From Rebecca billardiae RCC1528 (lineage: Eukaryota > Protista > Haptophyta): a stretch of DNA of 64,000 nucleotides. Below are positions 4,980 through 63,780 of this stretch, one piece after another (the first letter of the stretch is position 1; each line of letters starts with the position of its first letter). The DNA lies in the NCBI GenBank assembly GCA_965240325.2, contig OZ251229.1, positions 2,170,001 through 2,234,000 of the forward strand, in the 5' to 3' direction. The notes beneath the pieces are model-generated. The model did no database searches. It worked only from the letters and a program-made list of their open reading frames with translations, and was not told the DNA's origin. The translations under genes were made by a program, and so were the position numbers.

Positions 4980-7900
4980 TCATGCATATTCTGAGTCATC
5001 AGCTGTCGTCGCAGCGGATGCTGCCGACGGTGCGGCCAGCCAGCCAGGCACCGTGTCGCCGAGCGGCACCCAGCCCACGCCAGCGCACTCGACACCCCGG
5101 CCGCGCGTGTCGCCGTCGGCAACGGACGGCGGCGGCGCGCGCGCGTTGAGCGCATGCGTGTTCAGTGTCGCCGCCTTGAGGCACAGGTGGGCCATCGCGG
5201 CCATCACGTTGGCGGCGTCGACGTGCGGCACTGGCTCGAGCTGGTGGTGCCACGCGCCGCTCACCAGCGCGACGGGCTGCAGCCCGAAGAGCGGCGTCGC
5301 GCACGAGCGCTGCGCGACCGCAAGCAGCGCGACAGGTCCATACGCCGGCAGGTAGGACACCGCCTGCCAGCCATCGCTCGCACACGCGGTGGACGCGCCG
5401 AACTCGCGCACGTGCCAGCCCGGCTGCAGCCGCCCCGCGCCGGGCGCTGTGCTCGTCAGGGCAGCCTCCACCTTGGCTCGCACGCGCGCGTGCATCCTCT
5501 GCCCAAAGTCGCCCGACAGTCTGAGCAGCGCGTCCACGACCGAGCGCGGGAGCGCGCACGCGCGCACGAGCGCGGCGGGCGCGCCGACGACGGGCACGCC
5601 AAGCCGCGCGCACTGCGAGCTGAATTGCTCGCCAGGCGCGCTTGGGTAGATTGACGGCTCCGGCGGGACCAGCGCGATCGGCGCCGCGCGCTCGCGCCCC
5701 GCGCCCGCGGCGGCCAGGGCTGGCGAGCCGCGCGTGCCAGACGTCGCCATGGCAATGGTGGCCTGCTCGGACGCAGAAGCGGACGCCGAGAGGCGCTCTG
5801 CGTGCGCCGCGATCTCCGCCAGCCTGGCTGCTGACGTGCGCTGCTCGCCGCTCGCTGCAATCTGCGGCAGGCTGGGCGGAGGCGGACGGCGCCGGCCGGC
5901 GTGCGCCCACGGCGGCAGTGGGAATCTGCCCGGGGCGGCTGGAGGAGAGGCCGCGCTCGAGCGGCTCGTACGGCTCGTGAGTGTCGTGCGGGTCTTGCTG
6001 CTCCGCGACGCCGAGGAACGTCCGAATGGGACCGCGACCGGAGCGCCGGCGATGCCTGGGGCGCTCTGTCGGAGGGGGCGGGCCTTGAAGCTGTGCGCGC
6101 GAGCCGGCAACGGCGCGTTTGGGGGGTCGTCGCGCCGCCTGCCCGCATCGTCAGACCTGCTGCTGGTTTCGACCGCGCCCGGCTCGACGGCGCCTCTGCG
6201 GAAGCGCTCCAGAGCCAACTCCCACTCCGTCGCGGCGCTGGCCGAGCGCACGAGCGCCGGGGCGGCGCGCGTCGGAAGCGAGGACGGCTGCGGCGTGACA
6301 CTGCCAGCGTTCAGTCGCACACGGAGCTGCTGCCGAGCTCGCCGGTCCGGTGAGCGCCCGGACTCGGCCGCGCCCGCGGCCGGTTGCGTGTCCAGGGCCC
6401 CAAGCAGCTCGGGCGCGAGCGGCGCCGGCTCCGCGACCACGCCCACCACCTCCGCCACCTTCTCGCGCAGCAGCTTGGCGTGCACGCGCCCAAAGCGCGC
6501 CAGCAGCCGGGGCACGCCTGCGGGCACGACCAGCCGGACGCCGCCCGCTCGCAGCTGCTCGAAGCGCGTGACGAGCGCGTCCATCGCGCCACCTTCGCCG
6601 CGCTCGTCGTCGTCCGCGAGCAGCAGCGAGCCCGCCGTGACGATGCCGAGCTCGCTTGCCGTCTCGAGCGTCATCGAAGGCACGGCGGCGGCCGCCGCGT
6701 CGGGCGCGCACGACGGCGACGCGGCACAGCCGGGCTCGGCCGAGGGCGCGCGCTCGGCTGAGTCCGCGCTGGCGGTGGCGGGCACCCGTTCACGCACGAC
6801 GAGCAGCGCGGCGCAGTCGAGCGCGTTGAACTCCAGTAGCGCGCGCAGCGTGAGCAGCGTGAGCGCGGTGCCGTGCGTCGAGCAGCCCAGCGAGTCCTCG
6901 CGCAGCACGACCACCACCGCCTCCTTCCTACCGCCGCTGCCCACGCCCGCGCCGACCGAGGCGGCGATGCGCGTCTGCATGTACTCGCCAAGGGCGCGGC
7001 CATCGCACACGCCGGGAGCGGCGGCCGACTCGCCGATCAGCTCGGCGTGGCCGAGGCTGCTGGCGTCCCCGGTGTGGACCTTGAGCGACCCGAACGAGCG
7101 CGCCATTGCGCCCAGCGCCTTCCTGCCCGCGCGGCGGCCCGATCGCGAGAAGTCTCGGCCGCCGCTGCTTGTGTCCCGCTCCGTGACACTGTCACTCTCC
7201 GAGACGGCGGAGAGCCGGCCCTGGTGGATCGGGGCGGGGAGCTCCGGCGAGGGCGTCGCGCCGAGCGCGAGCGGCTCGAACAGCTCCGTGCACAGGCCTG
7301 GCACGCACGCGAGCAGCGCGACCACGTCGTACAGGTTGAAGCCGACCACCAGATCCCAGATCGGGTCCTCCGCCGAGCGCGCCTCCGCCTCGACGCGGCC
7401 GCTGCAGAACGTCTTCGAGAACCACGCGGCGTCGCAGCGCTCGGGAAGGCCGCGCCGCTCGGCCGAGCCCGGCGGCGCGGCCGCGCGGCGCCACAGCCCC
7501 TCGATCGAGTCGCGCTGCGCCTTGCGCAGCCGCCAGCCGATCGGGTTGCCCGACTGCGCGAGCTGGTCGTAGATGACGCGCGGCACGGGCGCCGCGTACG
7601 CAGCGTGCCGCGAGACGACGGTCACCGGGATGGCGAGCGCGCTGCAGCCGCGGTAGAAGTACTCGGCGGCGCCGAGGTCGAAGGTGTTGTTGTGCGCGGA
7701 GTCGGGCACGAGCGTGCGCTCCGCGCGGCTCTGCTCGACGTCGACGCCGCCCATCACGACCGCGCGCGCCAGCTTGTCCTTGCACAGCGCCGCGTCGTCG
7801 CGCAGCAGCAGCGCCGCGTCCTTGAGCGAGGAGATGCACAGCAGCGTGACGGACTTGGGCGGCGCGGCGGAGAGCACGCGGTAGAGCAGCGCGCGGCCGG

Positions 7901-10900
7901 GCTCGAGCTGCCGCGCGCGCTCCGACGACACCGGCGTCGCGTACTCCGCGCTCTCGAGGAAGCCCGCGCCGTGCGCCATGCTGCCGCCGTCCGTGCCAAT
8001 GCCCACGGGCACGTGCTGCAGCCCCAGCACGTCCAGCGTGCCGCGCACGAGCCGCGCGCGCTCGTACGCGGGGGTGAGGTTGGCGATCACGCCGAGCAGC
8101 TCGATGCGGCCCTCCATCTGCAGCGCGTGCGCCATCAGCAGCGCCATCTCGTCGTCCAGGTCCTCGCCCGCGTCGCAGATCACGAGCAGCGGCACGGGCG
8201 GCGGCGCGCGCTCCGCCGCGCCCTCGAGCCTGCGCTTGGCCGCGCGGTACCGCAGCCAGAGAAGCAGCGTGGCGAAGGCGGCGGCGACGATGGCGATCGT
8301 CGCGACGGCGGTGACGAGGACACTGGAGCTGTCCACGACCACCACCGTCGTGACGACGCTCTTCCCGTCGCCGTCGTCGCCGTCGCCGCCGTCGCCGCCG
8401 CCATCAGACGCAGCCTCCGCCGCCCCCGCGCGATCGGCCGGTGGCACGCGCTGCCCGGAGGCGAAGACGACGGGCAGGTGGAAGCGCCACGCGCCGTCGA
8501 CGAAGGAGCCGCGCACGGAGACGTCGAGGTGCGGCGTGCCGGGCATGAAGCCGCGCACCGTGAAGCGCGACGACTCCATCGAGCGGTCGCCGCTCTGCGC
8601 GTCGAAGCGCACGGCGCCAGTGATGCTCTCAAAGCCGGCGGCGAGCGCGCCGTGCCGCCACCACGCCTGGCGCGGCAGCACGGGCCAGCCGTTGGGGTCG
8701 CGCTCGGAGCGGCACGCGAGGAGGCCCATCGCGGCGACCGCGTCGTACGTGAGCGCGTCGATGTCGTTCGGCTCGTCCGCCTCCCACCACGCCGCGCCGA
8801 GCTGCCCCTCGGGCGGCAGGTACGCGTTGAGCTCGGCGGCGGGCGCGAGCTCGCCCGCCGCCCACTGCGCGCGGAACCGCTCCCACGCGGGCGCGCCCCA
8901 GCCGCCGGCGGCCTCGATCTGTACGCTGCCCAGCAGCGGCAGCGCGACGTCCGGCTCGGCGAGCGCGCCGTACTCGCTCGGGCCGATCATGTCCGTGAAG
9001 ATCCAGTGCTGCCTCGCCGTGAACAGACCGAGCGCAGTGCCGTTGCGCACGATCGACGGCAGGTCCGCCAAAAAAGTGAGGCACACGAGGATGCGGTGGT
9101 CCGCGCGGCGGAGCACGCCGAGCGCGTCGGCGATCGAGGCGGCGTCTCCCTCGGCGAACGGCACGTTTGCGAACGAGACGCCCGCCTCGGCGCCGTGCCG
9201 CTGCAGCGCCTGCGCGTACGCCGCGCCCGCGACGTCGTTCACGTGCAGCACGGCCGCGCGCGTCCATCCCCACTGCCGCACGTAGCCCACCACCAGCCGC
9301 GCGATGTTGTAGTCGCTCGGGATGGTGCGGCCGAAGGTGGGGTAGACCTGCGCGTCGGAGAGGCTCGGCGCGGTGCTCCAGTAGCTCACCATCGGCAAGC
9401 TGTGGATCCGAGCAAGCGTCGCCACCGGCTCGGACACGGCCGAGCGCGCCGCGCCCACGAGCACGTCCCAGCCAGATGCGTGGCCCCGCAGGTACTGCTC
9501 GACGCCGACGGTGGGCTGGCCCTCCGAGTGCAGCGGGCGTGGGTCGAGGACGACGTCGCAGCCCTCGTCGCGCAGCGTGTCGAAGACGGGCGCGAACGTG
9601 CCGTTCCGCGCGTTGAAGTGCGACACCGCGAGCAGCGCCGTCGCGAGCTTGCTGCGCTCGCCGCGGCGCGTCGGCTCGCCCCAGAAACGGCCGAGCAGCC
9701 CGACGCGGATGAGCACGGCCGCCTGCCCGTCGGCCGGCGGCTCCGTGCCGTCGTTGGCGAAGAGCAGCGGCGCAACGGCCGGGCTGTAACCCTCCGTGCC
9801 GAACGTGGCGATGCGCACCACGCTCGGCACGCTCGAGCCGCCGCCGAACCGCACGTTGGCAAGGACGACGGGCGCGGAGCCGAGCGCGCGGGCGCCGTGC
9901 TCGTCAAATCGGACCGGTCCCGTTGCGCCCTCGAAGCGCAGCGCGCGCAGCGAGGCGATCAGCGCGTCGGCGGTGGGTGTGGAGACGGCATCGGCGCTCG
10001 CGTGGCAGGCCGCGCGGCCGAGCGCCTCCACCGCCTCGTCCGCGAACATCACCGTCGCGGGCGGCGTGCCGCGCTCAATCAGCGCGCTCACGTTGGACGC
10101 CGACGCGGCGGCCGGCGGAAGCATCGCGCTCACGTTCGCCGCGTGGATGCGGCGCCAGGTCTCGTTGATGTAGCGCTCGTAGCGGCCGGAGCCGTCGTCG
10201 CCCGACGCCTCGATCACCACGCTGCCGTGCAGCAGCCGCCGCTCGTTGAGCGACGTCGCCGTCTCGAGCTCGATGCTCTCCGGGCCGTTCAGGATGACGT
10301 GACCCGTCAGCCCCGCCACACCGGCGGCGGCGGCGCCGTCGGCCAGCTGGCGGATATGGCGGCCGAACGCGATGACAACGACGATACGCAGTGGTTCGCC
10401 GTCGAGACCGACCATCTGCCCGATCGCGCCGCTCACCTCGCCGTCATCGCCGTCGAATGCAAAGCCCTTGCGGACGAGCGTGAGGCGTCGCGCCGCGCCC
10501 TCGCGCTCGATCGCGTCGGCGAGACCGCGGCCGAACGCGTCGTCCACGTGGACGAGGCCGATGTGGCGCCAGTTGTGATCGGTGATGTGCGCCACGATCG
10601 CCAGCGCCGTCAACTCATCCGAAGGTACCGTGCGCGCGAAGTGCGGCAGCTCCGCTGCGTTGGAGAGCTCGGGCGCCGTCGAGCGCGGCGACACGAGCAC
10701 GACAGGCAGGTGGGTTGCTGCGCGCGCCATGGCGAGCGTGACAGCCGATCGATAGGCACCAATGAGTGCAACAGCACCGGAGGCACGCGCCGTGATCAGC
10801 GCACTGAGGCCCGTGCCCTCCTCGCCGCGCGTGTCAGCCACGCCCCCCTCCACGAGCTCCAGGTGCACCGCGCACGGCGGCGCACGGTTCCATGTCTCGA

Positions 10901-11042
10901 TAGCGCCGAGGGTGGCGATAGCCAGCTCAGGCGTCTCACCGATGGGCAGGGCCACCCCCACACGGAGCACGATGTCGCCCACCGCTGTTTGGGGAGACAT
11001 GACTGCAGCCAGCAGCGCGGCGGCGGTAACAAGGCGAGTCAT
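4980..11042 (-). CDS. Single-pass receptor-like protein: signal peptide + 2 ANF-receptor/Venus-flytrap (PBP1) domains + TM + HopQ1/XopQ-like nucleoside hydrolase domain + degenerate second hydrolase domain
   Basis: Intronless 2020 aa ORF. VFT1 about 10970-9740 (LIGAYRSAVT, FARTVPSD, WRHIGLVHVDDAFG, FEGATGPVRFD). VFT2 about 9715-8430 (VGAARSAVS, FGRTIPSD, WTRAAVLH, YDAV, FESITGAVRFD). TM about 8323-8254 followed by RYRAAKRR. Hydrolase about 8190-6970 (ICDAGEDLDDEM, GIGTDGG, VVMGG, PDSAHNNTFD, SRHAAY, FNLYDVVALLACVP). Confidence 0.85.
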   Translation of the reverse strand: MTRLVTAAALLAAVMSPQTAVGDIVLRVGVALPIGETPELAIATLGAIETWNRAPPCAVHLELVEGGVADTRGEEGTGLSALITARASGAVALIGAYRSAVTLAMARAATHLPVVLVSPRSTAPELSNAAELPHFARTVPSDELTALAIVAHITDHNWRHIGLVHVDDAFGRGLADAIEREGAARRLTLVRKGFAFDGDDGEVSGAIGQMVGLDGEPLRIVVVIAFGRHIRQLADGAAAAGVAGLTGHVILNGPESIELETATSLNERRLLHGSVVIEASGDDGSGRYERYINETWRRIHAANVSAMLPPAAASASNVSALIERGTPPATVMFADEAVEALGRAACHASADAVSTPTADALIASLRALRFEGATGPVRFDEHGARALGSAPVVLANVRFGGGSSVPSVVRIATFGTEGYSPAVAPLLFANDGTEPPADGQAAVLIRVGLLGRFWGEPTRRGERSKLATALLAVSHFNARNGTFAPVFDTLRDEGCDVVLDPRPLHSEGQPTVGVEQYLRGHASGWDVLVGAARSAVSEPVATLARIHSLPMVSYWSTAPSLSDAQVYPTFGRTIPSDYNIARLVVGYVRQWGWTRAAVLHVNDVAGAAYAQALQRHGAEAGVSFANVPFAEGDAASIADALGVLRRADHRILVCLTFLADLPSIVRNGTALGLFTARQHWIFTDMIGPSEYGALAEPDVALPLLGSVQIEAAGGWGAPAWERFRAQWAAGELAPAAELNAYLPPEGQLGAAWWEADEPNDIDALTYDAVAAMGLLACRSERDPNGWPVLPRQAWWRHGALAAGFESITGAVRFDAQSGDRSMESSRFTVRGFMPGTPHLDVSVRGSFVDGAWRFHLPVVFASGQRVPPADRAGAAEAASDGGGDGGDGDDGDGKSVVTTVVVVDSSSVLVTAVATIAIVAAAFATLLLWLRYRAAKRRLEGAAERAPPPVPLLVICDAGEDLDDEMALLMAHALQMEGRIELLGVIANLTPAYERARLVRGTLDVLGLQHVPVGIGTDGGSMAHGAGFLESAEYATPVSSERARQLEPGRALLYRVLSAAPPKSVTLLCISSLKDAALLLRDDAALCKDKLARAVVMGGVDVEQSRAERTLVPDSAHNNTFDLGAAEYFYRGCSALAIPVTVVSRHAAYAAPVPRVIYDQLAQSGNPIGWRLRKAQRDSIEGLWRRAAAPPGSAERRGLPERCDAAWFSKTFCSGRVEAEARSAEDPIWDLVVGFNLYDVVALLACVPGLCTELFEPLALGATPSPELPAPIHQGRLSAVSESDSVTERDTSSGGRDFSRSGRRAGRKALGAMARSFGSLKVHTGDASSLGHAELIGESAAAPGVCDGRALGEYMQTRIAASVGAGVGSGGRKEAVVVVLREDSLGCSTHGTALTLLTLRALLEFNALDCAALLVVRERVPATASADSAERAPSAEPGCAASPSCAPDAAAAAVPSMTLETASELGIVTAGSLLLADDDERGEGGAMDALVTRFEQLRAGGVRLVVPAGVPRLLARFGRVHAKLLREKVAEVVGVVAEPAPLAPELLGALDTQPAAGAAESGRSPDRRARQQLRVRLNAGSVTPQPSSLPTRAAPALVRSASAATEWELALERFRRGAVEPGAVETSSRSDDAGRRRDDPPNAPLPARAHSFKARPLRQSAPGIAGAPVAVPFGRSSASRSSKTRTTLTSRTSRSSAASPPAAPGRFPLPPWAHAGRRRPPPPSLPQIAASGEQRTSAARLAEIAAHAERLSASASASEQATIAMATSGTRGSPALAAAGAGRERAAPIALVPPEPSIYPSAPGEQFSSQCARLGVPVVGAPAALVRACALPRSVVDALLRLSGDFGQRMHARVRAKVEAALTSTAPGAGRLQPGWHVREFGASTACASDGWQAVSYLPAYGPVALLAVAQRSCATPLFGLQPVALVSGAWHHQLEPVPHVDAANVMAAMAHLCLKAATLNTHALNARAPPPSVADGDTRGRGVECAGVGWVPLGDTVPGWLAAPSAASAATTADDSEYA

Positions 11043-12172
11043 AGCGACACGCCAGTGTGTGTATTGTCGTGGGCGAGTTGGGGCGTGGTCGCTCGGTGGG
11101 CCCGGGGTCGCTCGGTGGGAGAGAGATTCACCAGCAGATTCCCGCCCCCAACTTGCATCATGGTTGCTTTCGTCGATGATGAGGTACAGTACTACCCTAC
11201 CACCAAGTCTATCTTCTATTACTACATACAGTACTATCTAGTATCATAAAGTAAATCCAGTACTTGATGAATATTGTACCGTACTATCATACTGAAAAAA
11301 GTAGGTATCTCCGCATCATCTCCTACGCCGCCTACAAGCTCTAAAAATCCTTGCCTGACGGCCGTCCACGCACGACGTCCTTCTCCGGCTCGTCGTCCCC
11401 GACACGGCAAGCTAAACGCGACCGCGATCGGCCAAGGCGTTCGCGATCTAGACCATTGAGAAGCTACACACCTATGATATGGCCCACCTCATGCGCACTG
11501 GACCCCCCTTTGGGAACGGGGAAGGGAACGCCACCGCGCGCGCGCAGTGCGAGCAGCGCAGAGGAGTGGCTCCCTAGTCCCTGCTCAAGTGCCAGGCAGG
11601 GAAGTTGCCCTCCATCGCGAATGATCGCTGCATGCGCGGCGCTATAGTGCGAGCGTTCTGCCAGCTCTGCAGCGTAACTCCGAGCTCGCGCGAGTCGTGG
11701 GCACGTCGCAGGGGCCATGCCAGGCGAGGGTGCGTACGCGTGTGCACCACCACAATCAAGATGGCAGTCGATCGCCCTCGAGTGCTGAGGACGACAGCGA
11801 GGGTGCCTTCGCGTGCGCACCAGACGTGCGCGACCCAGGACTATGAACGAATGGTGGGGTTTGATCCGCAGCGAAGTGCCGTCATACGGTAGGCCGTCGG
11901 ACGCTGGCCAGCTCGTGCTTCTGCACGGGAATCTATCTCATATCTGCAGCCACGCGAGTCACGCCGGCATGATGATAGCTCATTCGCTTATTAGCTGCGG
12001 CGGGCATGGATGAGTAGCGGTGCATGAGTAGCGGCAGACTCATGCTCATGAGCAGCGGCAGACTTACCCATCGTGATCATATGATGCTCGTCCGATAATG
12101 CGCAGTCACACCCAGTCACACACTGCCTGCGGCACGCGGCGGCAGGACTCGTGACACTGACTGATAGAGACT

Positions 12173-16978: not shown

Positions 16979-19900
16979 TTAGGGGCGGAGCTCGAGCTCA
17001 AGGCGCGCGGGCAGCGGCGCGCCGGGCTCAGCATTCTGAATGCACTCGGCGAGCGCGCCCGCCATGGCCTTGCGCGGCGCCGCGCGGCCCGTCCACAGCT
17101 CAAACTGCGCCACGCCCTGCTCGAAGAGCATCTCCGAGCCGTACACGAGCGCGCAGCCCGCGGCGGCCGCGCCCTCGAGCAGCGGCGTCAGTCGCGGCAG
17201 GTACGCCGCGTCCATGACGGCGGGGCGATGCTGCTGCAGCAGGGGCGCGGGCACGCGCACGCCCGCGCTGCCCGGGACCGTGCCGACGACGAGCGTGAGG
17301 CGCGGCGGCGAGAACGTCGCAAGGTCCTCGACGAGCTGTGGGCACGCGGGTGCGTGGCGGCGGGAGCGTGCGTGAGCGAGGGCGGCGCTCGCTGGCTGGC
17401 GCCCACGCCGCAGGGGTGCCGTGCCGTGCGTGGTAGCGCGCACCTCGGCACTAAACTCCTCCGCCAGCGCCTTAGCCTTGCTCGTGGTCCGGTTCCAGAC
17501 GTAGAGCGGCGAGGCGCCGAGCTGGGCGAGCGCGAACAGCGCGGCGCGCGCCGTGCCCCCGCCGCCGAGCACGAGCCCGGCGTCCGCGCCGCCGTCGGCT
17601 GCGGCGCCCGCCGCGCGCGCGCCGCGCGCGTGCGGCTGCAGGCTGCGCGCAATCCCGATCCAGTCCGTGTTGTCGCCGAGCGTGCGCCCGTCGTCTGTGC
17701 GGATCAGCGTGTTGACGGCGCCTGCACACCGCGCGCGCGCGCGCGCAAGCCGCCGAGGCCGCGCCGCAGGTGCCGCGCCGCAGGTCGGGTGTGCGTGAGC
17801 GCAGCGTGCGCCGGGCGATGGCCGGCCCGGCGCGGCGCGCGGCGCGCGGCGGGCGCGCGGTGGGCGCGCGGCGCGCGGCGCGCGAGGCGGCGGCGGCTGC
17901 GTTGTCGGGCGCGCACCGATCTTCGCGGCCGCCGCCGTCTGGGCGTCGAGCAGCGCGTCGAGCTGCTCCTTCAGCGGGATCGTCACCGACGCGCCGCCGA
18001 AAGGTGGGGCTGAGCCCGCCTCGCCGGCGCCCGTCGCCGCAGCGCCGTCGGCGCCCGTTGGCGCGCCGTCGGCCGCGCCGTGCACAATCGCGCGGACGGC
18101 ATCGACGCTCTGTGCGTCCACAGCCTCGTATTCGTGCGGCAGCGAGTGCGCGGCGAAGGCGGCGTTGTGCATCGCCGGCGACGGGCTGCGGCCCACCGGG
18201 CTGCCAAAGATGGCGAACCGGCGCGCCCGCTGCGCAAAGCCCTGCGCCGCGCGCAGGCGAACGAGCTCGGCCACGCTCAGCTGGCCGGGCGCACCGGCGA
18301 CAAGCAGAGGATGCGTCACCGGCGTCATCGTGAGGTTGAGGACACGCGAGAGCTTGCCTGCGCGCCACGCGCGCGCGGCGGGGGGCCGAGGCGTGCGTGC
18401 GTGGGCGCGCGAGCGTGCCGGTGCCTCAGAGCAGACTCGCGCGGCACGGGGCGCGGCCGCAGCACTGGGCGCGCCACGCGCCGCGCGGAGGCAGGCCTCG
18501 CGCGCGCGCGCGGCGCGGCCGCGCGGCTCACCGGCGTCGCCGACACAGATGCAGATGACAGCGGCGTCCGAGCGCTTCTGCCGCAGCTTGCCCAGCATGC
18601 GGTCCGCGAGCGCGCGCATCGCGAGCGAGTCCGCCGCGGACTCCGCGCGCAGCACGAGCTTGGCGATCGCCTGCCACGCACCGAGGCACAAGCGGGCGCA
18701 GCAGACGCGGGCGGGCGGCGCGCGCCGGGCGCACGCACGCGTCGGTACACGCACGGGGGGGCACAGCACACGTTGGGAGAAGTGGCGTCGTGAGGCGGAG
18801 GCGCAGGCTCGGGCTCGGCGCGGTCCGCCCGGCGGCGCGCCCGCCCGCGGCCCCGCCGGCACCGCCGTGACGCGCGCGCGCGCGCACCGCCTTCCCGTCC
18901 AGCGCGCACGCCGTCAGCAGCTTCTCTGGGTCGAGCTCGCCGCCGGTCGGCGTGCGATGGAAGTCGTGCGTGGAGCCGATCACCGCGGTCACCGCGCCGC
19001 ACGCGGCGACGACGGCGTTGACGAGGTGCTTGGTGCGGCCGACCTCGACGTCGAGGAGCTCGACGGCCGCGCGGCTCGCCACCGCGCACGCGCCCTTGTA
19101 CGCCTCCTCCGACCCGTCGAACTTGCCGCCCTCGCCCTTGGAGCGCAGAGTGAACACGAGATTGCATCTCGTGTGCCGCCGGAGCGTCGCGATGGCCTCG
19201 CCGTGCGCGCGCGCCGACGTGTCGGCGAGGAGGTCGGCGCGGAGCTCGAGGGCGTCGACGCCGAGCGTGAGCTGCGGGAGCTTGGGCACGAGCTCCGCCA
19301 CCGTCGGCGCCGAGAGCGTGAGGAAGAACGAGTGCTCGCGCGGCACCGGCGGCGGCACGTCGCCGGTCACGCGCCGCACGAATCTTACGAAATCGTCCGT
19401 GACCGCCGCCCATTCCTCGTCGCCCTCGCGGATGACGAAGTCGTGCGAGGAGACGGCGGCGTAGAGCGGCGCGCGGCGCTTGAGCACGTCGAGCGTGGAC
19501 TCGCCGTACGCCGGGCGCTGCGCCGTCGAGCCCTCGCCGTCGAGCGTGCGCACGATGTCCGCCGCGGACTTGTCGATGTGAACGACGATGGCGCCCGAGC
19601 CGGCAAGCAGCGCGCGACTCGCCTCCGACTCGACGACGCCGCCGCCCGTCGAGATGACGGCGGCGGTGGCGTGCTCCTCGAGCACGCCGCCGAGCAGCGC
19701 GCACTCGGCCGCGCGAAACCCCGCCCAGCCGTGCTGCTCCACGTACGCCGACACCGCGCCGTGCCGCGCGACGAAGCGCTCGTCAAGGTCGACGAACACG
19801 CGCCCGAGCGCGCGCGCGGCCGCGGTGCCGAGTGACGTCTTGCCCGAGGCGCGCATGCCGACGAGGACGAGCGAGGCGGCGGAGGCGGCGGAGGCGACGG

Positions 19901-22463
19901 CGGCGGAGGCGGCGGCGGTCGCGGGCGCCGCCGCCTCCACGCCCACGCCCATCTTCGTCGCCAGGTCCGACCAGAACTCCGGGTACGTCTTGTCGACGCA
20001 CGCGGCGTCGAGCAACGTGACGCCGGGCACGGCGCAGCCGAGCGTTGCAAAGGACATCGCAATCCGGTGGTCCTTGTAGCAGTGGATGCGCGCGGGGCGG
20101 AAGGCGGAGGGGTGCATGCCGGTGACGCGCACGCCGTCCGCCGTCTCCTCGCACTTCACGCCCAGCTTGCGCAGCTCCGTCACCGTCGCCTCGATCCGGT
20201 TGCACTCCTTCACGCGCTGGTTTGCCACGCCGGAGATTGTCGAGGTGCCGTCCGCGACCGCGGCGAGCGCCGCGGCCGTCATGAACGCGTCAGTCATCGA
20301 CTCCATGTCCAGGTCGAAGGGCTTGAGGCGCACGCCGGCGGGCGGGCCCGTGACGCGCGTCTCGCGCTCGGTCTGCTCCACCTTGCACCCCATCGTCTCG
20401 CACAGCGAGTAGAACGCCGCGTCGCCCTGCGTCGACTTGGAGCCGATCGCCTCGGCGACGACGGTGCCCCCGGAGATGGCGGCGATCGCAAGCGGGTACG
20501 TTGCGCTGGAGGCGTCGGCCTCGACCTCGACGAGGGGCGGGTTGACGTAGGTGCCCTTGGGCACGCGGTACGTCGTGCTCCCCTCGCGCTCCACCTGCAC
20601 GCCGAACTCCGCCATCAGCTGCACCGTCATCTCGATGTACTGCTGCGAGACTGGCGCCTCGGGAAGGCTTAGCACGACGGGCGCGCGCGCGTACGGCGCC
20701 GACAGCAGTACTGATGAGACGAACTGCGACGAGACCTTGCCCGAGAGGCTGACCTGCCCGCCGGGGAGGCCGCGCGCGCGCACGACGATCGGCAGCGAGT
20801 TCGACGACTCGAGGTGCTCGATGTCGCACCCGATCGCGCGCAGCGCCGACGTGAGGTCGCCAATCGGCCGCTCCTTCATACGAGGGTCACCCGTGAGAGT
20901 CGTGCCAGGCGCGCCCTTCGCCTCGATCAGCGCGCACGTGGAGGTGAGGAAGCGCGAGGCGGTGCCCGCGTTGCCCAGGTACAGCGGCTTGTCCGTCGAC
21001 GGGCGCAGCCGCCCGCCGCACCCGTCCACGCGCAGCACCTCGCCGCCCTCCTCCCATGCAAATTTGGCGTCGGAGATGAGCTGCAGCGCGGTCAGCATCA
21101 CGTGAGTGTCGTCCGAGTGGAGCAGCCCGCGCAGGCGGCACGGCCCCTTGCCGAGGGCGGCCATGAGGAGCACGCGGTTCGAGATGGACTTGGAGCCGGG
21201 CACGCGCACGCGGAAGTCGAGCGAGCCGTACGCCGGCGGCACCACCGTCAGCGCGCTCGCCAGCAGCCGCTCGAGGTGCGCGATGGCCACGGGCTGAGGC
21301 GTGTCGTGTGAGCTGCCGATACCCGTCACAATCGTGCAGCGCACGGCGCCCGCGGCGTTCTTCTTGTCGAGCTTCATCTTGTCGAGCAGCGCGCTCACCT
21401 CGAGCCCCGGCGGCAGCGCGGTGGGCAGCCCCAGCGCCTTGAGGCACCGCGTGATCCGCCCCACCGCCGCGGTGGTCAGCTCGCCCAGGTCGCGCGCGAG
21501 CGCCGCCTCGATCACCATGCCGATCGACACGCACTCGCCGTGCAGCAGCGCGGGCGACATGAGCGCCTCGATGGCGTGGCCGACGGTGTGCCCGAAGTTG
21601 AGGGTGGAGCGCAGCCCCGTCTCCTTCTCGTCGAGCGCCACCACCTCCGCCTTCAGCCGGATCGCCTCGCCCGTCGCGTGCGCCACCGCGTCCGGCTCCA
21701 GCTCAAGCAGCTCCTTGGCCGCCGCCTCCACAGCCTCAAAGAGGGGCGCGCAGCGGATGACGCCCATCTTGACGACCTCGGCGAGGCCCTCTGCGACCTC
21801 GCGCCTGCCGAGCGAGCGCAGCAGGTCGACGTCCGCGAAGACGCGCCGCGGCTGATGGAACGCGCCGATCAGGTTCTTGCCCGCGGGCACGTTGACGGCC
21901 GTCTTACCGCCGACGGACGAGTCTACGATGGCCATCATCGAGGTGGGCACCTGGAAGACGGGCACGCCGCGGAGGTAGGTTGCGCTGACGAAGCCGCTCA
22001 GGTCGCCCACCACGCCGCCGCCCAGCGCCACCACGCACGTGTCGCGCACGCAGCGGTTGGCGAGCATGAAGTCCTCGACCGCCTCCTTCACGCGCCGGTC
22101 CTTGGACTTCTCGCCGGGCGCGATGGCGTAGTGCAGCGGCGTGATGCCGCGCTTGGCGAACGCGGCAACGAGCTGCTCGCCGTACAGCCCCCACACCGTC
22201 TCGTCGCTCAGGATCACGTACTTGCTCGCCTTGAAGCCGTCCGCCTCGAGCGCGGCCGCAATCTCGTCCGGCACGCGCGCAAACAGCCCGCGGCCGACGA
22301 CCACCTCGCTGCCGCCCACGACGGGGATGCGGCGGAGGCCGTCGGAGCCCACGGTGGCGCGTGGCTGCTTGGCGCTCGGGCCCTCCTCCGATGTCGACGG
22401 GCCTGCCGCCGCCTTGGGCGGCGTCGCGCCCTTGCGCGGCGACACGCGGCGCTTGGGAGCCAT
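16979..22463 (-). CDS. ARO1: Pentafunctional AROM polypeptide (DHQ synthase-EPSP synthase-shikimate kinase-type I DHQase-shikimate dehydrogenase); exons 22463-18888, 18670-18532, 18357-17917, 17721-17444, 17335-16979
   Basis: DHQS: LGGGVVGDLSGF, DSSVGGKTAVN, LNFGHTVGHAIE. EPSPS: PGSKSISNR, LGNAGTASRFL, SSQFVS, RVKECNRI, DHRIAMSF. SK: GMRASGKT, STGGGVVE. DHQase: LELRAD, FTLRSKGEGG, APGQL. SDH: SPSPAMHN, SVTIPLK, GAVNT, GDNTDWIG, LGGGGTARA. Confidence 0.96.
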
Positions 22464-22756
22464 GATGACGAGCACAGGGCAGGCAATCAGCCGACGACGG
22501 CCAGCGGGCCACGCGCCCAGCTCGCGAGGGAGAGCCGCACGGGTGCGCAGGATCGGGATGTCGGAGCGCAAATCTGAATGCAGCGCTTGTGACCTTGTCG
22601 ACCGACTGTTTGCGGTGGTCCGGACCACCCGTTCCCGGATTCTCACCGCTCCCACGACTCACGAGCCCAGAAAGGGCGGGACCCTGACGTTTGAGGCCCC
22701 AATCCGCCCCGCCCACGGAGCCCTCCCGCCCTTCCCGCCGCCGCGCACCACACACC

Positions 22757-25011: not shown

Positions 25012-25401
25012 GTGTGTGGGCCCTCCAGCCGCCAGCGACCGCCATTGCGCCGCGCGCGCTCTGTGCTCGCGCCGCTGGCGATCGCCTTCGCGCCGCACGC
25101 GCGCTCACGCACAGTCGCGGCGCAGCCCAGCCCGTCACGGAATGGGTCGCGCACACTCTGAAGATGCACCCTGCTGAGCATGACGTGTGCAGCCCGAGTT
25201 GCCCGCAGCCTCGCCCCGCCATGATATTGAGGAAGCCGGCGGCCATTGAATATCCGGCTATCGCGTGGAAGTGGCTCTGAATGTGCCAGGATGGCGGTCT
25301 TCCCGCGCGAGCCGCTCATTGGCTGCGGCGCGAGGATGAAGCTGCACCCTGAACTCTCGGCGGTCTCGAAGGCCCGCGCCCGGCCTCCGCTGGACGCCGC
25401 G

Positions 25402-28400
25402 ATGAGCCGCGCCGTCGCATCGACCCTGCTGCTCGCGTGCGGCGTGTGCGGGCTACATGCGGCGTCGCCCTGGGCGCGTCTGCATCCTGTCGTGCCGCGC
25501 ACGCCGCTCGGCTCGCGCCTGCGCTCGCGCGTCACTCTGTCGACCGTAGAGCGCACAGCTGCCGCGGAGCCCACACGCGCTGCCACCGCACCAGAGGGCG
25601 ATGACGGCGAGCAGCGCATCGTGCTCATCTCAGGCTTCGAGTCGTTCAACGTCGAGCTCTACCGCCAGTGCGCCGCCGAGCTCGCCGAGGCCATCCCGGG
25701 CGTGCGCGTCGACGTGTTCAGCGACCGCGACCTCACGGCACGCCGGGCGGAGGTTGAGACGGCGCTCGAGCGCGCGGACGCGTTCGTCGGTGCGCGCGCG
25801 CGCGCGCGCGCGATCGCGGCCGAGCGCCAGCATGCTGGCACGCCTGACCCGCGCCTGTGCGCCGCCTCTGCCTCTGCACGCCGCTGCGCCGCGTGCGCGG
25901 CGCTGCGCGCTGCGCGCGGCCGTGCGTCCTCGCGCGCCGCGGTGCGCTCCGGCGCAGGCTCGCTCCTGTTCGACTATGACGACGTCGAGTTCCTGCTGCC
26001 GCGCGTGGAGGCGGTGCGTGGCCCACGGCTGGTCTTCGAGTGCGCGACCGAGCTCATGGCCGCGAACCGAGTCGGCTCGTTCGAGATGGCGGGCTCGGAC
26101 GGCGCGTCGGCCGGCCCTCCGCCCGCCGTCAAGGCCGTCCTGAGCAAGTTCGGCTCCGGCAAGGAGGAGGACAAGCTGGCGGGGTACCTCAAGCTGCTCA
26201 AGGTGGGCCCGGAGCTGCTGTCGCTCGTGCCCGGCGAGAAGGCGTCGGACCTGCGCTCGTGGCTCACGGCCTACCGCTACTGGAACCAGGGCGGCAAGTC
26301 GAACGTGCGCGCCATGCTGACGATGCTGGCCCAGCAGCACTTGCTGCCTGCGAAGCGCGCGCAAGCGCCGCACGGGGGCGGCTCGGCCGACGGCGGCGGC
26401 GTGGAGGCGGCGCTGGCGGAGGTGGAGCTGCCCGCGCTGGTGGAGACGCCGGCGCTCGGGCTGCTCCACCCGCTCGCGCGGGGGCGCTACTTCGCCACGC
26501 CCGCGGAGTACGTGCGCTGGCGCGAGTCGGACGCGTGCGCGGCAGAGGCGGAGCGCGCTCGGTTCTCGCTCGCGCCGCCGGGCGCGCCGCGCGTCGCGGT
26601 GCTGCTGTTCCGCAAGCACGTGATCACGGAGCAGCCGTACATCCCGGCGCTGCTCGCGCAGCTCGAGGCCGAGGGCCTCTGCCCCGTCCCGATCTTCATC
26701 AACGGCGTAGAGGCTCACACGGTCGTGAGAGACCTTCTCACCTCCGAGCGCGAGCGCGAGGCGGTGCGCGCGGGCCGCGCGCGGTACGAGCCGAGCTTCG
26801 ACGCGGCGGGCGCGGCGACGGTCGACGCGGTGGTGAACACGATCGGCTTCCCGCTCGTCGGCGGCCCGGCCGGCTCGATGGAGGCCGGCCGCAACGTGCC
26901 CGTGGCCCAGCAGTTACTCTCGCAGCTTGATGTCCCATACATCGTCGCCGCGCCGCTGCTGCTGCAGGATCTGGTCTCGTGGAAGCGCGACGGCGTGCAG
27001 GGGCTGCAGTCGGTGGTGCTGTACGCGCTGCCCGAGCTCGACGGCGCGATCGACACGGTCGTGCTCGGCGGGCTGGCGGGCGACCGGATCGGACTGGTTC
27101 CGGAGCGCGTGCGCAAGCTGGCCGCGCGGCTCAAGGCTTGGGTCCGCCTTCGGCGCACGCCCAAGCAGGAGCGAAAGGTGCGGCGCTGCGCCCGCCGCGC
27201 TGCCCTCGGCGTGTCCTCCGCGCGGGCGCGTGCACTGGCCCGTGCTTGCGCCGCGCCGTGCACGCGACAAGCGCGCGGTTTGTGCGTGTGCCGCGCGCGC
27301 GCACGCGCACCCCTGGGCAGCGTCAACACGCGCGCCCGCACTGCGCGCGCGCACTCTCGCCTGCCTATGTTTGCTGCCCGCGGCCCGCGCGTGCGTGTGT
27401 TCCGCGCGCGTGGCCCGCTGCGACGCGCGCCGCAGCTCTCGGTCCTGCTGTACGGCTTCCCGCCCAACGTGGGCGCGGTCGGGACGGCGGCGCTGCTCAA
27501 CGTGCCGGCCTCACTCGAGCAACTGCTCGGCGGGCTTCACGCTGAAGGCTACGACCTCGGCGGCTGGGCAGACGACCCCGCGGCCAGCGGCGAGGCGCTC
27601 GTGGCGGCGCTCGCGCTGCTCACGCGCGACGACGCGATCGCGGCCGGCCCGTCGCGCATGGAGCAGCTGCTCGAGGCGGCGGCCGAGCGCGCGCGCGCGG
27701 GCGACAAGACAGTCAGCGCGGCGCTCGGCACGGACGGCGCCGGCCTGGGCGGCGCGCGCGTGCGCGCGGTCGAGCTGCGCGGCGCCGAGCTGCGGTCAGC
27801 GCTCGGGCCGACGCGGGCGGCGCAGCTCGAGAAGTGCTGGGGCGACCTCCGCGACCGCTCGCCCGGGCCCGGCGTGTCCGCGGACGGCGGGCTCGTGGTG
27901 GCAGGGCTTCAGATTGGCAACGTTTGGATCGGCGCGCGCGCGCCGCCCGACCACGGCCGCGGGTCGGCGTTTGCGCGCGCGCGCGCGCGGCAGCCGTCTT
28001 CGCCGCGGCCTGACGCCGCCGGCGCCCCGCGCCCCCGCCCGCCCGCCCTCGCGCGCGCGCGCGCGCGTGCAGGCGTGCAGCCGCTGCTCGGGCTGGAGGG
28101 CGACCCGATGCGGCTGCTCTTTGAGCGCGACCTCACGCCGCACCCGCAGTACGTAGCGTTCTACCACTGGCTGCGCTCGCCCCCGGAGCAGGGCGGGCTG
28201 GGCTCGCAGGCGCTGGTGCACTTTGGGATGCACGGTGCGGCGCGGCGGGGGCCGGAGAGGGTGCCACCCGGCGCCGAGCGAGCGCGCGAGCACAGCGCGC
28301 GCGCGCGGTGACGCGCACCCGCCATCTCCCCCACACACGCGCGCCCGGCGCGCGCGCGCGCGCGCGCGCTTGCGACCAGGCACTGTCGAGTGGCTGCCGG

Positions 28401-30613
28401 GGCAGCCGCTGGGCAATGACGCTCGCTCGTGGCCAGACACGCTGCTCGGCGACACGCCCAACCTGTACATCTACGCCGCCAACAACCCGAGCGAGTCCAC
28501 GCTGGCGAAGCGGCGCGGGTACGGCACGCTCGTCTCCCACAACGTGCCGCCGTACGGCCGCGCGGGACTGTACCTCGAGCTCGCGCAGCTGCGGGAGCTG
28601 GTGGACGAGTATCGGGCGGCGCGCGCGGCGGGCGGCGAGCAGGACGAGGCGGGCGCTGCGCTGCGCGCGCCGATCGCGAGCGCGGCGGCGCGCGCCGGGC
28701 TGCTCACGGAGGTGCCGTGGGAGGCGCCGGACGGCGCGGACGGCGCGCACGAGGCCGTAGCGCCGGCCGCGCTCTCCGCCGACGCCGACCCCGCCGACGC
28801 CGAGGACGAGTCGGAGCGGATCGCGGCCGCGCCGGGGTCGCAGTTTGACGCCTGGCTCGGCCGGCTGCTGGCCTATCTCGCCGAGCTGCAGAATCGGCTC
28901 TTCTCGAGCGGCCTGCACACGCTCGGGGCGACGCCGGGCGCGGAGGCGCTCGAGTGTTACCTGGAGGCGTACTGCGCGGGCAAGCTCTCACACGCCGCGG
29001 TGCGGGCGATCGCGGCGCTGCCGGCGGACGCGCCGCTCGGCGAGGCCGCGCGCGCCGAGGGCCTCACCGCGATTGAGGCGGAAGCGCTCCGTCAGGAGGC
29101 GGCCGCCGCCGCGCCGCCCAATGCGCTACAGTGGCTCATGGAGCAGCTGCAGGCATGGCAGCGAACGCTGGCGCCGGCTGACTCGGCCGACGCGGCCGAC
29201 GCCGGCGCGCCGCCCGCCGACGCCGACGCCGACGCCGTCTCCGACGCGAGGCGCGCGCTCGCGGACGCGCACGCGGTCCGCGCCCTCCTCGGCCGCTCGG
29301 CGGAGGAGCTCGGCTCGCTGCTCCGGGGGCTCGACGGCGGGTACGTGCCCGCCGCGCCGGGCGGCGACCTGCTGCGCGACGGCGCGGGCGTGCTGCCGAC
29401 CGGGCGCAACATCCACTCGCTCGATCCGTACCGCATGCCCTCCGAAGGCGCGTGGGCGCGCGGCCGGCTCGCCGCGCAGCGCATCCTCGAGCAGCACCGC
29501 GCGGCCAACCGCGGCGCCTACCCGGAGACGGTCGCGGTCACGATGTGGGGCCTCGACGCGATCAAGACGCGCGGCGAGTCGGTCGCGATCGCGCTCGAGC
29601 TCGTCGGCGCGCGGCCTGTGAAGGAGGGTACCGGCCGCGTCGTGCGCTTCGAGCTCGTCCCGCTCGCGGAGCTCGGCCGGCCGCGCGTCGACGTGCTCGC
29701 CTCCCTCTCCGGCATCTTCCGCGACTCCTTTGCCAACGTGGTCGACCTACTGGACGACCTGTTCGAGCGCGCGGCCGCGGCGGATGACGAGCCGGCCGAG
29801 CAGAACTTCGTCAAGAAGCACGCGGACGAGCTGCGCGCGCAGGGCGTGGAGCGGCCGGCCGCGCGGCTCTTCTCCAACCCGCCCGGCGACTACGGCTCAA
29901 TGGTCAACGAGCGCGTCGGCTCGGGCGAGTGGGAGCAGGCGGCCGAGCTGGGCGACACGTGGGCGTCGCGCAACGCCTACTCGTATGGCCGCGCCGAGCG
30001 CTCGGCCGACGGAACGGCGCGCGCGCCCGGCGCCGCGCGCCCCGAGGTGCTCGACAAGCTGCTCTCGACGACCGAGCGCGTCGTGCAGGAGGTCGACTCC
30101 GTCGAGTACGGGCTGACGGACATCCAGGAGTACTACGCCAACACGGGCGCGCTCAAGGTGGCGGCGGAGCAGCGCGGCGGGCGCGAGCGCGTCGCCGTCT
30201 CGATCGTCGAGGCGTTCGCCGGCGGCGACGACGTGCGCCCGCGCGACCTCGAGCAGACGCTGCGCCTCGAGTACCGCTCGAAGCTGCTCAACCCGAAGTG
30301 GGCGGAGGCGATGGCGGCGCAGGGCGCGGGCGGCGCGTACGAGGTGTCTCAGCGCATGACGGCGATGGTCGGCTGGGCCGCCACCTCGCGCGTCGACAAG
30401 TTCGTCTTCGACGGCGCCGCGGAACGGTACGCGCTCGACGCGGAGATGGCCGCGAGGCTGCAGCGCGCCAACCCGGAGGCCTTCAAGAACGTCGTGCGCC
30501 GGCTGCTCGAGGCGGCCGGCCGCGGGCTGTGGGACGCGGAGGAGGACGTTGTCGACCGCCTCAAGGAGCTGTATGAGGAGGCCGACGACCTCGTCGAGGG
30601 CGTCGGCACGTAA
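25402..30613 (+). CDS. chlH: Magnesium chelatase H subunit (CobN/ChlH family, second 'ChlH2/BchH-like' type) with plastid-targeting presequence; exons 25402-25789, 25958-27177, 27436-27931, 28073-28234, 28380-30613
   Basis: Motifs RIVLISGFESFN, TIGFPLVGGPAG, LPELDGAID, YGFPP, GVQPLLGLEGDPMRLLF, HFGMHGTVEWLPG, YAANNPSE, LPTGRNIH, LSGIFRD and RSKLLNPKW. N-terminal signal peptide MSRAVASTLLLACGVCG. Confidence 0.94.
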
Positions 30614-62201: not shown

Positions 62202-62401
62202 GCCGGCGGGACTGCGTCGTGGTCCGGGCGCAGCAGCCACGGAACCTTCACGCACGCTCTGACAATGAGCGAAGCGATATGCTGCAGCGTGACAGTCACG
62301 AGTCGGACATAACTTTACTAGCCCCACGCTAGTAGTCGTACCTTACTGCTTACTAATAAGGATAAGAGACGCACACCGTTAGTAGAGCTCAGGCTCGGAC
62401 A

Positions 62402-62436
62402 AATTCTATGATTTAAAGACACAGGCACGAGGGCGC
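62402..62436 (+). repeat. 35 bp dispersed repeat, copy 2
   Basis: Identical to 12173-12207. Confidence 0.9.
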
Positions 62437-62739
62437 AGCTCTCCTGATTCGTCTGTAGTGGTACTGGTCGAAGCTTGCAGCAGTGGCAGTGGTGTGAGCG
62501 CGTTGATGTTGGTCCCCATGGCGCATGTCGTTGTTGTCGTCGTCCGGACGTCGTCAGGCCCACCAGGAAGTGCATGGGTACGAAATCAAAGGCGAGTGAG
62601 CATGTTGGCGTCGGCCAGGCCGTCCCCTACTTGGTCAGCAGCTGGTGCGGATGATGTCGTCGCCTACTTGGTCAGTGGCAGGTCATGGTGGACGATGGTG
62701 TAGCCTGTTCTTGGTCAGCAGCTGGTGGATGATGTTGTG

Positions 62740-63678: not shown

Positions 63679-63757
63679 TCGGGGACTGGTTCCGGTACTT
63701 GTGGGGGATGGTCGTGTCTCTGCTGGGCCTGGTGGTTCTGGTTGAGCTCGTCCTCCT

Positions 63758-63780
63758 CCCCCCCCCCCCCCCCCCCCCCC
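63758..63780. repeat. Poly-C homopolymer (23 nt)
   Basis: Direct reading. Confidence 0.95.

Follow-up and report, generated by a model that had tools for sequence, protein, structure and literature searches.

A double Venus-flytrap receptor with a predicted XopQ/HopQ1-like cytoplasmic hydrolase in the haptophyte Rebecca billardiae

The stretch of Rebecca billardiae RCC1528 DNA analyzed here (64,000 nucleotides; GenBank assembly GCA_965240325.2, contig OZ251229.1, positions 2,170,001 to 2,234,000 of the forward strand; hereafter "the window", with positions counted from its first letter) carries on its minus strand an open reading frame (ORF) that, judged from its sequence, encodes a real type I single-pass receptor enzyme, whose membrane topology and disordered segments are predictions. 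The 2020-aa product combines a predicted extracellular part composed of two Venus-flytrap (VFT) domains with a cytoplasmic part, in which a putative Ca2+-dependent glycohydrolase domain related to the bacterial effectors XopQ and HopQ1 (the first HopQ1-like protein domain, HLP1) is followed by a degenerate second copy (HLP2). As the best explanation of this arrangement, to which we tentatively assign a probability of about 0.45, the protein may be a ligand-regulated eraser of an ADP-ribose (ADPR)-type messenger, controlled from the cell surface. As far as the searched literature shows, the receptor architecture is new; single-pass receptor enzymes and the HLP family were both known already. 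There is a fair chance that the receptor marks a new signaling axis.

The assignment of HLP1 was examined by sequence and by predicted structure. In a phmmer search of the PDB, the domain was matched best by XopQ (7jlu_B, E = 1.8e-40; 4kl0 and 4p5f, approximately 1e-38), with about 30% identity, whereas the best classical nucleoside hydrolase (1mas) gave an E value of 5e-4. The AlphaFold2 (AF2) model of HLP1, for which a family alignment of 105 sequences served as input, reached a predicted local distance difference test (pLDDT) value of 95.4 and a predicted template modeling score (pTM) of 0.93. When this model was compared with the PDB using Foldseek, the top four matches were XopQ chains (E values of 6e-22 to 4e-21; template modeling (TM) scores of 0.74–0.80), headed by 4p5f_A, the complex of XopQ with ADPR (E = 6e-22, TM score 0.80). 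The classical enzymes (TM scores of 0.5–0.6, E values of approximately 1e-11) were found ten orders of magnitude behind XopQ. Both by sequence and by modeled fold, HLP1 is placed in the XopQ/HopQ1 branch, which agrees with an earlier note on this DNA, made by a model from the letters alone, that had preferred this branch to the classical DxDxxxDD enzymes.

HLP1 contains the non-canonical motif DxxxDxDD in the form D957-A-G-E-D961-L-D963-D964, with D957 located about 26 residues past the transmembrane helix. Further motifs are AHNN at 1116, SRHAAY at 1144 and NLYD at 1236, and thus the four cytoplasmic motifs listed in the earlier note are all present. Conservation was assessed in a hidden Markov model (HMM) alignment of 119 full-length HLP domains. 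Nine residues (D957, D961, D963, D964, N1118, D1122, R1145, Y1238 and D1239) are each conserved in at least 92% of the family, and HLP1 retains every one of them; the aspartates of DxxxDxDD are each kept in 109–111 of the 119 domains. In a HMMER alignment, the 7jlu_B residues opposite D961 and D1239 have the chain positions 133 and 412; since one offset of 13 fits both, D961 and D1239 correspond to D120 and D399 of XopQ. HLP1 therefore carries both of the aspartates needed for XopQ catalysis. The conserved part is not limited to the core domain: the family consensus runs on beyond it, and in an AF2 model of aa 935–2020, in which HLP1 is confident, pLDDT is below 50 at model residues 331–391 and 68–95 at residues 391–430.

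The published biochemistry of XopQ and HopQ1 defines what such a domain might do. Both effectors cleave the 1''-2' O-glycosidic bond of 2'cADPR, a TIR-made cyclic ADPR isomer, to yield ADPR (Roth et al., June 2026, bioRxiv 10.64898/2026.06.15.732069). According to the same preprint, XopQ acts on 2'cADPR with a Km of 336 nM and a kcat/Km of 1.4e7 M-1 s-1, is inactive on nucleosides, 3'cADPR, cADPR, pRib-AMP, 2',3'-cAMP and 2',3'-cGMP, and loses 2'cADPR hydrolysis in the D120N/D399N form used as inactive control. The 2',3'-cyclic nucleotide activity of these effectors, mentioned in the earlier note, could not be reproduced there. In the XopQ crystal, ADPR is held via its ribose at the Ca2+ site, the equivalent of the nucleoside hydrolase catalytic site, with closure of a lid, and XopQ keeps no residues for activating a leaving nitrogenous base (PMC8910321). 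An algal clade of HopQ1-like proteins, with DxxxDxDD as the defining arrangement, was described by Piechocki et al. in 2018 (PMC6019455), and that paper also cites an earlier report that HopQ1 hydrolyzes the cytokinin precursor iPRMP in vitro. In another haptophyte, Gephyrocapsa huxleyi, receptors with a leucine-binding-like ectodomain, one transmembrane helix and a TIR domain possessing the catalytic Glu are induced within 0.5 h of virus addition (PMC12489294). Since haptophyte receptors of this layout have been reported, a plausible producer of ADPR-type signals with a similar architecture exists.

HLP2, which did not figure in the earlier note's account of the gene, could be recognized in two separated pieces. 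Its C-terminal half (aa 1801–1930) is similar to HLP1 (BLASTP E = 4e-5, 28% identity over 137 aa) and to the family profile (hmmsearch E = 6.6e-5 at HMM positions 183–306; hhalign 92.7%), while aa ~1475–1533 of the N-terminal half align with family positions 102–158 (hhalign E = 1.1e-4). A MAFFT alignment showed the entire region to be colinear with the second domain of proteins bearing two intact tandem HLPs. The core pieces were modeled with pLDDT values of 70–95 (80–91 for the core segments of the N-terminal half) and with the order of strands and helices seen in HLP1. The place of the catalytic PDxAxNNxFD loop is occupied by the long insertion (AF2 pLDDT 25–45; 57 Ala, 35 Pro, 33 Ser and 33 Arg among 265 residues), the Asp motif is replaced by REDSLGCSTHGT, and PAYG is found instead of NxYD. 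As predicted from sequence and model, HLP2 is a degenerate, non-catalytic copy of the HLP1 fold, in which the catalytic residues have been lost.

Pfam analysis of the whole protein identified ANF_receptor (3.5e-52, in two stretches), Peripla_BP_6 and, at aa 956–1166, IU_nuc_hydro. When the two halves of the ectodomain were scanned separately, VFT1 matched PF01094 with 98.2 bits (E = 6.7e-28, profile positions 29–341 of 353) and VFT2 with 90.1 bits (E = 1.9e-25), the curated cut-off of this family being 25.4 bits. The halves also align to each other (31% identity over 331 residues, E = 2e-28). Since both pass the ANF_receptor threshold and are similar to one another, the ectodomain contains two complete flytraps, as the earlier note had claimed. 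Their best solved relatives are class C G protein-coupled receptors (GPCRs; mGluR6/8/4, GABA-B1, CaSR, T1R) and a bacterial solute-binding protein. VFT1 was matched best by mGluR6/4/8, CaSR and the bacterial protein 4mlc, and VFT2 by mGluR6/8 and GABA-B1 (E values up to 5.8e-12), with which it has the signature GAxxSxVS...SYxSTAPxLSD...IPSD in common. An ESM Atlas search returned generic ANF_receptor clusters only, with scores not exceeding 0.74.

Lobe 1 of both flytraps retains the signature G-A-x-R-S-A-V-(S/T) ... S-(Y/P)-x-S-T-A-P-x-L-S ... (V/I)-P-S-D; the aligned mGluR6 segments read GASASSVS ... SYASTAPELSD ... VPPD. In mGluR1, the alpha-amino-acid moiety is bound by S165, T188 and D208, and we take the signature columns to be those of this Ser, Thr and Asp. 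As this Ser/Thr/Asp signature is kept, we suspect that the ligand of the ectodomain may be amino-acid-like.

The N-terminus of the protein, MTRLVTAAALLAAVMSPQTAVG/D, resembles a signal peptide: its n-region is basic, the hydrophobic core spans 12 residues, and the end is of the A-x-G cleavage type (judged from sequence alone). Only in the transmembrane helix does the Kyte-Doolittle mean over 19 residues exceed 1.9 (peak 2.46), and the helix is followed directly by the basic stretch RYRAAKRR. Since a signal peptide, one transmembrane helix and RYRAAKRR are combined, the positive-inside rule predicts that the part C-terminal of aa 931 is cytoplasmic, in accordance with the type I topology given in the earlier note. 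Five of the seven N-x-S/T sequons are located in the ectodomain; the other two lie in the cytoplasmic part within conserved HLP1 segments, and one of them is N1118 of AHNN.

Several other assignments were considered and rejected. A class C GPCR was discarded, as the protein has no PF00003 (7TM_3) match and one hydrophobic segment only, and a receptor guanylyl cyclase, as neither Pkinase nor Guanylate_cyc was matched and the cytoplasmic part consists of HLP1 and the degenerate HLP2. A classical IU-nucleoside hydrolase (IU-NH, RihA, YeiK) is not compatible with the DxxxDxDD motif, the 5e-4 match and the TM scores of 0.5–0.6. A type III effector in the strict sense was rejected because the domain lies behind a signal peptide, two flytraps and a transmembrane helix in a eukaryotic nuclear gene, the neighbors of which are AROM, Mg-chelatase ChlH and further ordinary genes.

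The G+C content of the window DNA is 65–75%. Since such DNA yields long ORFs easily, the length of an ORF is by itself weak evidence; an example is the 1458-codon ORF at 6873–11249 of the plus strand, antisense to the receptor gene, which failed the filter for coding-type G+C content at third codon positions (GC3) and appears to be a mere shadow of the high-GC3 gene opposite. For the receptor gene, GC3 is 0.75–1.0 in all 33 successive 60-codon blocks, the low-complexity tail included, and only 0.57–0.60 in the flanks (900 bases on each side). Protein homology is found in-frame along the entire ORF, with recognizable domains from its first to its last tenth. The GC3 pattern and this homology fix the reading frame, and the earlier note's uninterrupted ORF of 2020 codons is thereby borne out, with the minus strand, which it had left unstated, now added. 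Past the upstream in-frame stop, translation could begin at the ATG at 11042 at the earliest, and the signal-peptide-like segment begins directly after this ATG. Inspection of the sequence revealed no sign of an intron, and an exact look-up of the 2020-aa product in public gene calls gave no match. The features of the gene are summarized in Table 1.

Table 1. Predicted features of the receptor gene and its product (window positions; aa, amino acid residues).
Feature	aa	Position	Strand	Basis
Whole coding sequence, 2020 codons and stop, apparently a single exon	1-2020	4980..11042	minus	ORF listing, translation, GC3
Signal-peptide-like N-terminus, MTRLVTAAALLAAVMSPQTAVG	1-22	10977..11042	minus	read from the translation by eye
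Venus-flytrap domain 1 (VFT1), ANF_receptor/type I periplasmic-binding fold	25-440	9723..10970	minus	Pfam PF01094 6.7e-28
Venus-flytrap domain 2 (VFT2)	441-860	8463..9722	minus	Pfam PF01094 1.9e-25, PF13458 2e-14
Acidic Gly/Asp-rich stalk	861-906	8325..8462	minus	sequence; without Cys-rich domain
Single transmembrane helix	~907-930	8253..8324	minus	Kyte-Doolittle
Basic stop-transfer stretch RYRAAKRR	931-938	8229..8252	minus	sequence
HLP1, XopQ/HopQ1-like hydrolase domain with active-site residues intact	945-1270	7233..8210	minus	PDB phmmer, AF2, Foldseek
Ser/Arg-rich disordered linker, then conserved HLP1 C-terminal helix region	1271-1324, ~1325-1364	6927..7232	minus	AF2
HLP2, N-terminal half, Asp motif replaced by REDSLGCSTHGT	~1373-1536	6435..6926	minus	tandem-protein alignment, hhalign, AF2
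Disordered Ala/Pro/Ser/Arg-rich insertion, ~260 residues	1537-1800	5643..6434	minus	AF2, composition, alignment
HLP2, C-terminal half, NxYD replaced by PAYG	1801-1930	5253..5642	minus	BLASTP, hmmsearch, hhalign
C-terminal tail, partly helical then disordered, without family match	1931-2020	4983..5252	minus	AF2

The distribution of HLP1 relatives was examined by an exhaustive HMMER search of 1.84 billion representative sequences, which gave 1339 clusters at E ≤ 1e-3, of which 300 reached E ≤ 1e-30. HLP1 fits the family consensus DPGxDLDDE ... PDxAHNNxFD ... SRxAAYA ... FNxYD and nests among algal sequences. Most of the relatives found are soluble tandem HLP-HLP proteins of approximately 1150 aa with both copies intact. 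The closest full-length kin, P0005 and P0006, carry ectodomains of other kinds, but share with the present protein a single transmembrane helix immediately preceding HLP1 and the degeneration of HLP2. P0005 is KFE25_002800 of the pavlovophyte Diacronema lutheri (2408 aa; HLP1 63% identical; PBP_like_2 ectodomain), annotated in databases only as a hypothetical or "PBP domain-containing" protein, and P0006 is an environmental protein of 2341 aa, whose ectodomain contains Laminin_G_3 and cadherin-like repeats. In three fragments with 60–65% identity (P0033, P0041 and P0153) a transmembrane helix is also located just upstream of the HLP domain. The predicted unit of transmembrane helix, HLP1 and degenerate HLP2 is a reusable receptor output module, present behind three kinds of ectodomain.

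In a FastTree phylogeny of 119 domains, HLP1 of this protein and those of P0005 and P0006 formed one clade (support 0.998), placed within a 27-member clade (0.991) together with the first domains of tandem proteins and apart from the second domains. This placement suggests that the receptor ancestor was probably a tandem HLP-HLP protein, the second copy of which later decayed in the receptor lineage. The reverse pattern was observed in P0026, P0004, P0039 and P0106, in which the first HLP has lost the aspartates of the Ca2+ motif and the second keeps them. The pairing of an active with an inactive HLP seems to have evolved repeatedly in the family.

Elsewhere, HLP domains are fused to a class III cyclase together with AAA_16/NACHT and TPR, the layout of signal transduction ATPases with numerous domains (STAND), to TPR alone, or to a protein kinase; further partners are ankyrin repeats (in a Polykrikos transcript), sulfotransferase, Nudix, VanZ and TerB. 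Of these partners, the cyclase-AAA_16/NACHT-TPR, kinase, ankyrin and Nudix modules are of the signaling or immunity type.

[quoted passage not shown] Tandem XopQ-like domains are joined to a sulfotransferase in P0099, P0122, P0123 and P0128, and to a kinase or kinase-like domain in P0106 and P0024. P0004 contains an N-terminal Nudix domain before its tandem HLPs; its best PDB match, the ADP-sugar pyrophosphatase NUDT5 (E = 0.009), is a faint hint. PDB searches of the unexplained parts gave a kinase-like match for P0024 and no match for P0021. Nine long metagenome ORFs scanned with Pfam contained IU_nuc_hydro at most and no other family, and the genomic surroundings of a cyclase-STAND-TPR-HLP gene and of P0006 were uninformative.

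Under the explanation that we prefer, a small extracellular ligand, likely amino-acid-like, would close the flytraps. Their closure would be passed through the single helix to the membrane-proximal, cytoplasmic HLP1/HLP2 pair, the changed dimer or pseudo-dimer geometry of which would switch HLP1 on or off. Judged by its homology to XopQ, the HLP1 domain would most likely cleave a ribose-linked bond of an ADPR-derived messenger (2'cADPR or a related product of TIR-type NADases), yielding ADPR, and HLP2 with its insert might constitute a regulatory or docking part. The earlier note had proposed that such an enzyme makes or destroys a messenger; because the preprint did not reproduce the activity on 2',3'-cyclic nucleotides, we regard destruction as much more likely than synthesis. 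The existence of such a receptor suggests that algae may regulate nucleotide signals of this kind from the cell surface. It is a speculative and rather doubtful extension that haptophyte-type algae run a writer/eraser system at the receptor level, in which flytrap-transmembrane-TIR proteins would make the messenger and flytrap-transmembrane-HLP proteins would erase it under ligand control, with HLP2 in a regulatory role and XopQ/HopQ1 as mimics or descendants of eukaryotic terminators of 2'cADPR-type signals.

Some observations weigh against the eraser explanation. The 2'cADPR activity of XopQ is known from a preprint. The position of XopQ Y279, which may be a specificity determinant, is occupied by His in HLP1 and is variable in the family (H in 35 domains, A in 23, Q in 20, N in 15 and Y in 13), and this variability together with the identity of only about 30% means that the substrate of HLP1 may differ from that of XopQ. 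Since Pfam found a TIR domain in none of the ~88 family proteins or ORFs scanned, the link to TIR rests on homology and on one paper on another haptophyte. No orthologue with the VFT-HLP combination was found in another species, the database searches with the whole protein and with VFT2 being blank and thus uninformative on orthologues, as low-complexity words probably swamped the candidate list. A metagenome scan by close alignment yielded 36 loci, none closer than 58% identity. A search of sequencing runs gave no RNA; the sole matching run provided eight small contigs, four of which are at least 99% alike to the stretch.

HLP1 might instead be a nucleotide-depleting or N-glycosidic effector, acting on NAD+, ATP/AMP or cytokinin-type riboside monophosphates, so that ligand binding would lead to growth arrest, death or a metabolic shift, in the manner of the nucleosidase effectors of STAND/NLR proteins. 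The terminal position of the HLP domain in the cyclase-AAA16/NACHT-TPR proteins, which is the usual effector place, the hydrolysis of iPRMP once reported for HopQ1 in vitro (cited in PMC6019455) and the variation at the Y279 position, which suggests differing substrates, all fit this proposal. However, several studies found no activity of purified XopQ or HopQ1 on standard nucleosides or nucleotides, XopQ is without the residues to activate a leaving base (PMC8910321), and a cell that constitutively expressed a receptor family with an output of this type would put itself at risk. We consider this proposal unlikely.

A non-catalytic HLP1 could bind an ADPR-like molecule or a protein partner, serving as a scaffold like adaptor TIRs or integrating an intracellular nucleotide cue with the extracellular ligand. 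For a long time XopQ was regarded as a protein that binds ADPR and closes around this ligand without being active, and the degenerate copies, which are common (HLP2 here and the first copies of the four proteins with the reverse pattern), point to binding-only roles within the family. Yet the Ca2+/ribose site, with both catalytic aspartates, is complete in HLP1 and lost in HLP2, as would be expected under selection for HLP1 catalysis; we judge this possibility quite improbable.

A third alternative is nutrient-linked salvage, in which a membrane-tethered nucleoside hydrolase would free ribose and base from imported nucleosides while the flytraps sensed nutrients such as amino acids. Pfam does place HLP1 in IU_nuc_hydro, and amino acids or other nutrients are frequent ligands of such VFT domains, but the distance from the classical enzymes (E = 5e-4 versus 1.8e-40; TM scores of 0.5–0.6 versus 0.8), the DxxxDxDD motif in place of DxDxxxDD and the fusion of HLPs to signaling proteins, not to transporters or salvage enzymes, make it very unlikely. 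Finally, that the gene model is an artefact (two genes joined, in-frame introns or an unexpressed pseudogene) is highly improbable: long ORFs do arise by chance in high-GC DNA, as the antisense one illustrates, and neither a public gene model of exactly this product nor transcript support from the run search is at hand, but coding GC3 is unbroken from ATG to stop and falls in both flanks, the signal peptide, VFT1, VFT2, transmembrane helix, HLP1 and HLP2 share one stop-free frame, the helix also precedes HLP1 directly in P0005, P0006, P0033, P0041 and P0153, and the catalytic residues of HLP1 are intact.

Only very recently was XopQ/HopQ1 demonstrated to be a 2'cADPR hydrolase of near diffusion-limited efficiency, which shuts down TIR immunity in plants; that work treats it as an invention of the pathogen. 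The present gene and its relatives reveal a large eukaryotic family of this enzyme type, and in algae the domain is built into receptors of the cell surface, STAND/NLR-like proteins, kinases and cyclases. Should HLP1 act on a cyclic ADPR isomer, this would be the first receptor enzyme with hydrolysis of such a messenger as its output, there would be evidence that TIR-type nucleotide signaling is native to, and regulated in, marine phytoplankton, and a lead would be available on where a major class of plant-pathogen effectors came from in evolution. The question is open to a direct test that needs one soluble domain, a short panel of substrates and two point mutants as controls. As for novelty, no paper in the library searched combines a nucleoside hydrolase with a Venus flytrap, and the papers on XopQ and algae do not treat the architecture; the earlier note likewise knew of no described receptor of this kind, whereas the HLP domain itself has been known in algae since 2018 (PMC6019455).

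Around the receptor gene, the window carries ordinary genes such as a photosynthetic eukaryote has in its nucleus, encoding AROM, Mg-chelatase ChlH, an aldehyde dehydrogenase and a triose-phosphate-type transporter. An operon-type context was rejected, as the neighboring genes are unrelated housekeeping genes, and no second HLP or flytrap gene was found within the 64 kb. The AROM-type pentafunctional shikimate gene (18531–22658, minus strand) is one ORF of 1376 codons with DHQ synthase, EPSP synthase, shikimate kinase and dehydroquinase domains. Mg-chelatase subunit H (CobN/ChlH; 25231–30610, plus strand) is divided between two overlapping ORFs, 25231–28308 and 28157–30610, and therefore a short intron or a frame change is expected near 28157–28308. 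At positions 62001–64000 the G+C content drops to 0.57 and the GC skew rises to +0.16, unlike in the remaining window.

Among known proteins, XopQ/HopQ1/RipB of Xanthomonas, Pseudomonas syringae and Ralstonia (PDB 4kl0, 4p5f and 7jlu) have in common with HLP1 the fold, about 30% identity, the DxxxDxDD, AxNN and NxYD motifs and both catalytic aspartates. These effectors differ in that they are soluble, monomeric and injected by bacteria, and in that they have an N-terminal region for secretion and 14-3-3 binding, whereas HLP1 is the predicted cytoplasmic output of a eukaryotic membrane receptor, has a degenerate twin behind it and carries His at the Y279 position. HLP1 fits the family of algal HLPs described in 2018, and no mention of receptor fusions was found in the passages of that account that a search by terms brought up (PMC6019455). 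The class C GPCRs (mGluR, GABA-B, CaSR and T1R) provide the best solved matches of both flytraps, and the GxxxS / S-x-x-S-T-A-P-x-L-S / PSD signature of lobe 1 is conserved; unlike them, the receptor described here lacks the seven-transmembrane and Cys-rich domains and has one transmembrane helix only.

Natriuretic peptide receptors A and B consist of an ANF_receptor ectodomain, one transmembrane helix, a kinase-homology pseudoenzyme and a guanylyl cyclase. They are alike in having an ANF_receptor flytrap outside, a single helix and a cytoplasmic pair formed by a pseudoenzyme and a nucleotide-messenger enzyme. The present receptor differs from them in having two flytraps, not one, in lacking the kinase-homology and cyclase domains, in the order of its pair (the enzyme precedes the pseudoenzyme) and in its output, which is probably hydrolytic and would end a signal. 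Two tandem flytraps control a cytoplasmic enzyme through one transmembrane helix in the BvgS-type sensor kinases, but BvgS has flytraps of the type II binding-protein class and a histidine kinase as output. CD38 and BST1 are ADP-ribosyl cyclases/cADPR hydrolases, of which CD38 is membrane-anchored and hydrolyzes a cyclic ADPR messenger; the fold of CD38 is unrelated to that found here, and it has no ligand-sensing ectodomain. A receptor of the same phylum, cogent1101_i1 of G. huxleyi, likewise combines a leucine-binding-like domain and one transmembrane helix with a cytoplasmic signaling enzyme of the NAD/ADPR type (PMC12489294). The G. huxleyi receptor has as its output a TIR domain, which probably produces the signal, whereas the R. 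billardiae receptor has a XopQ-like hydrolase, a likely degrader.

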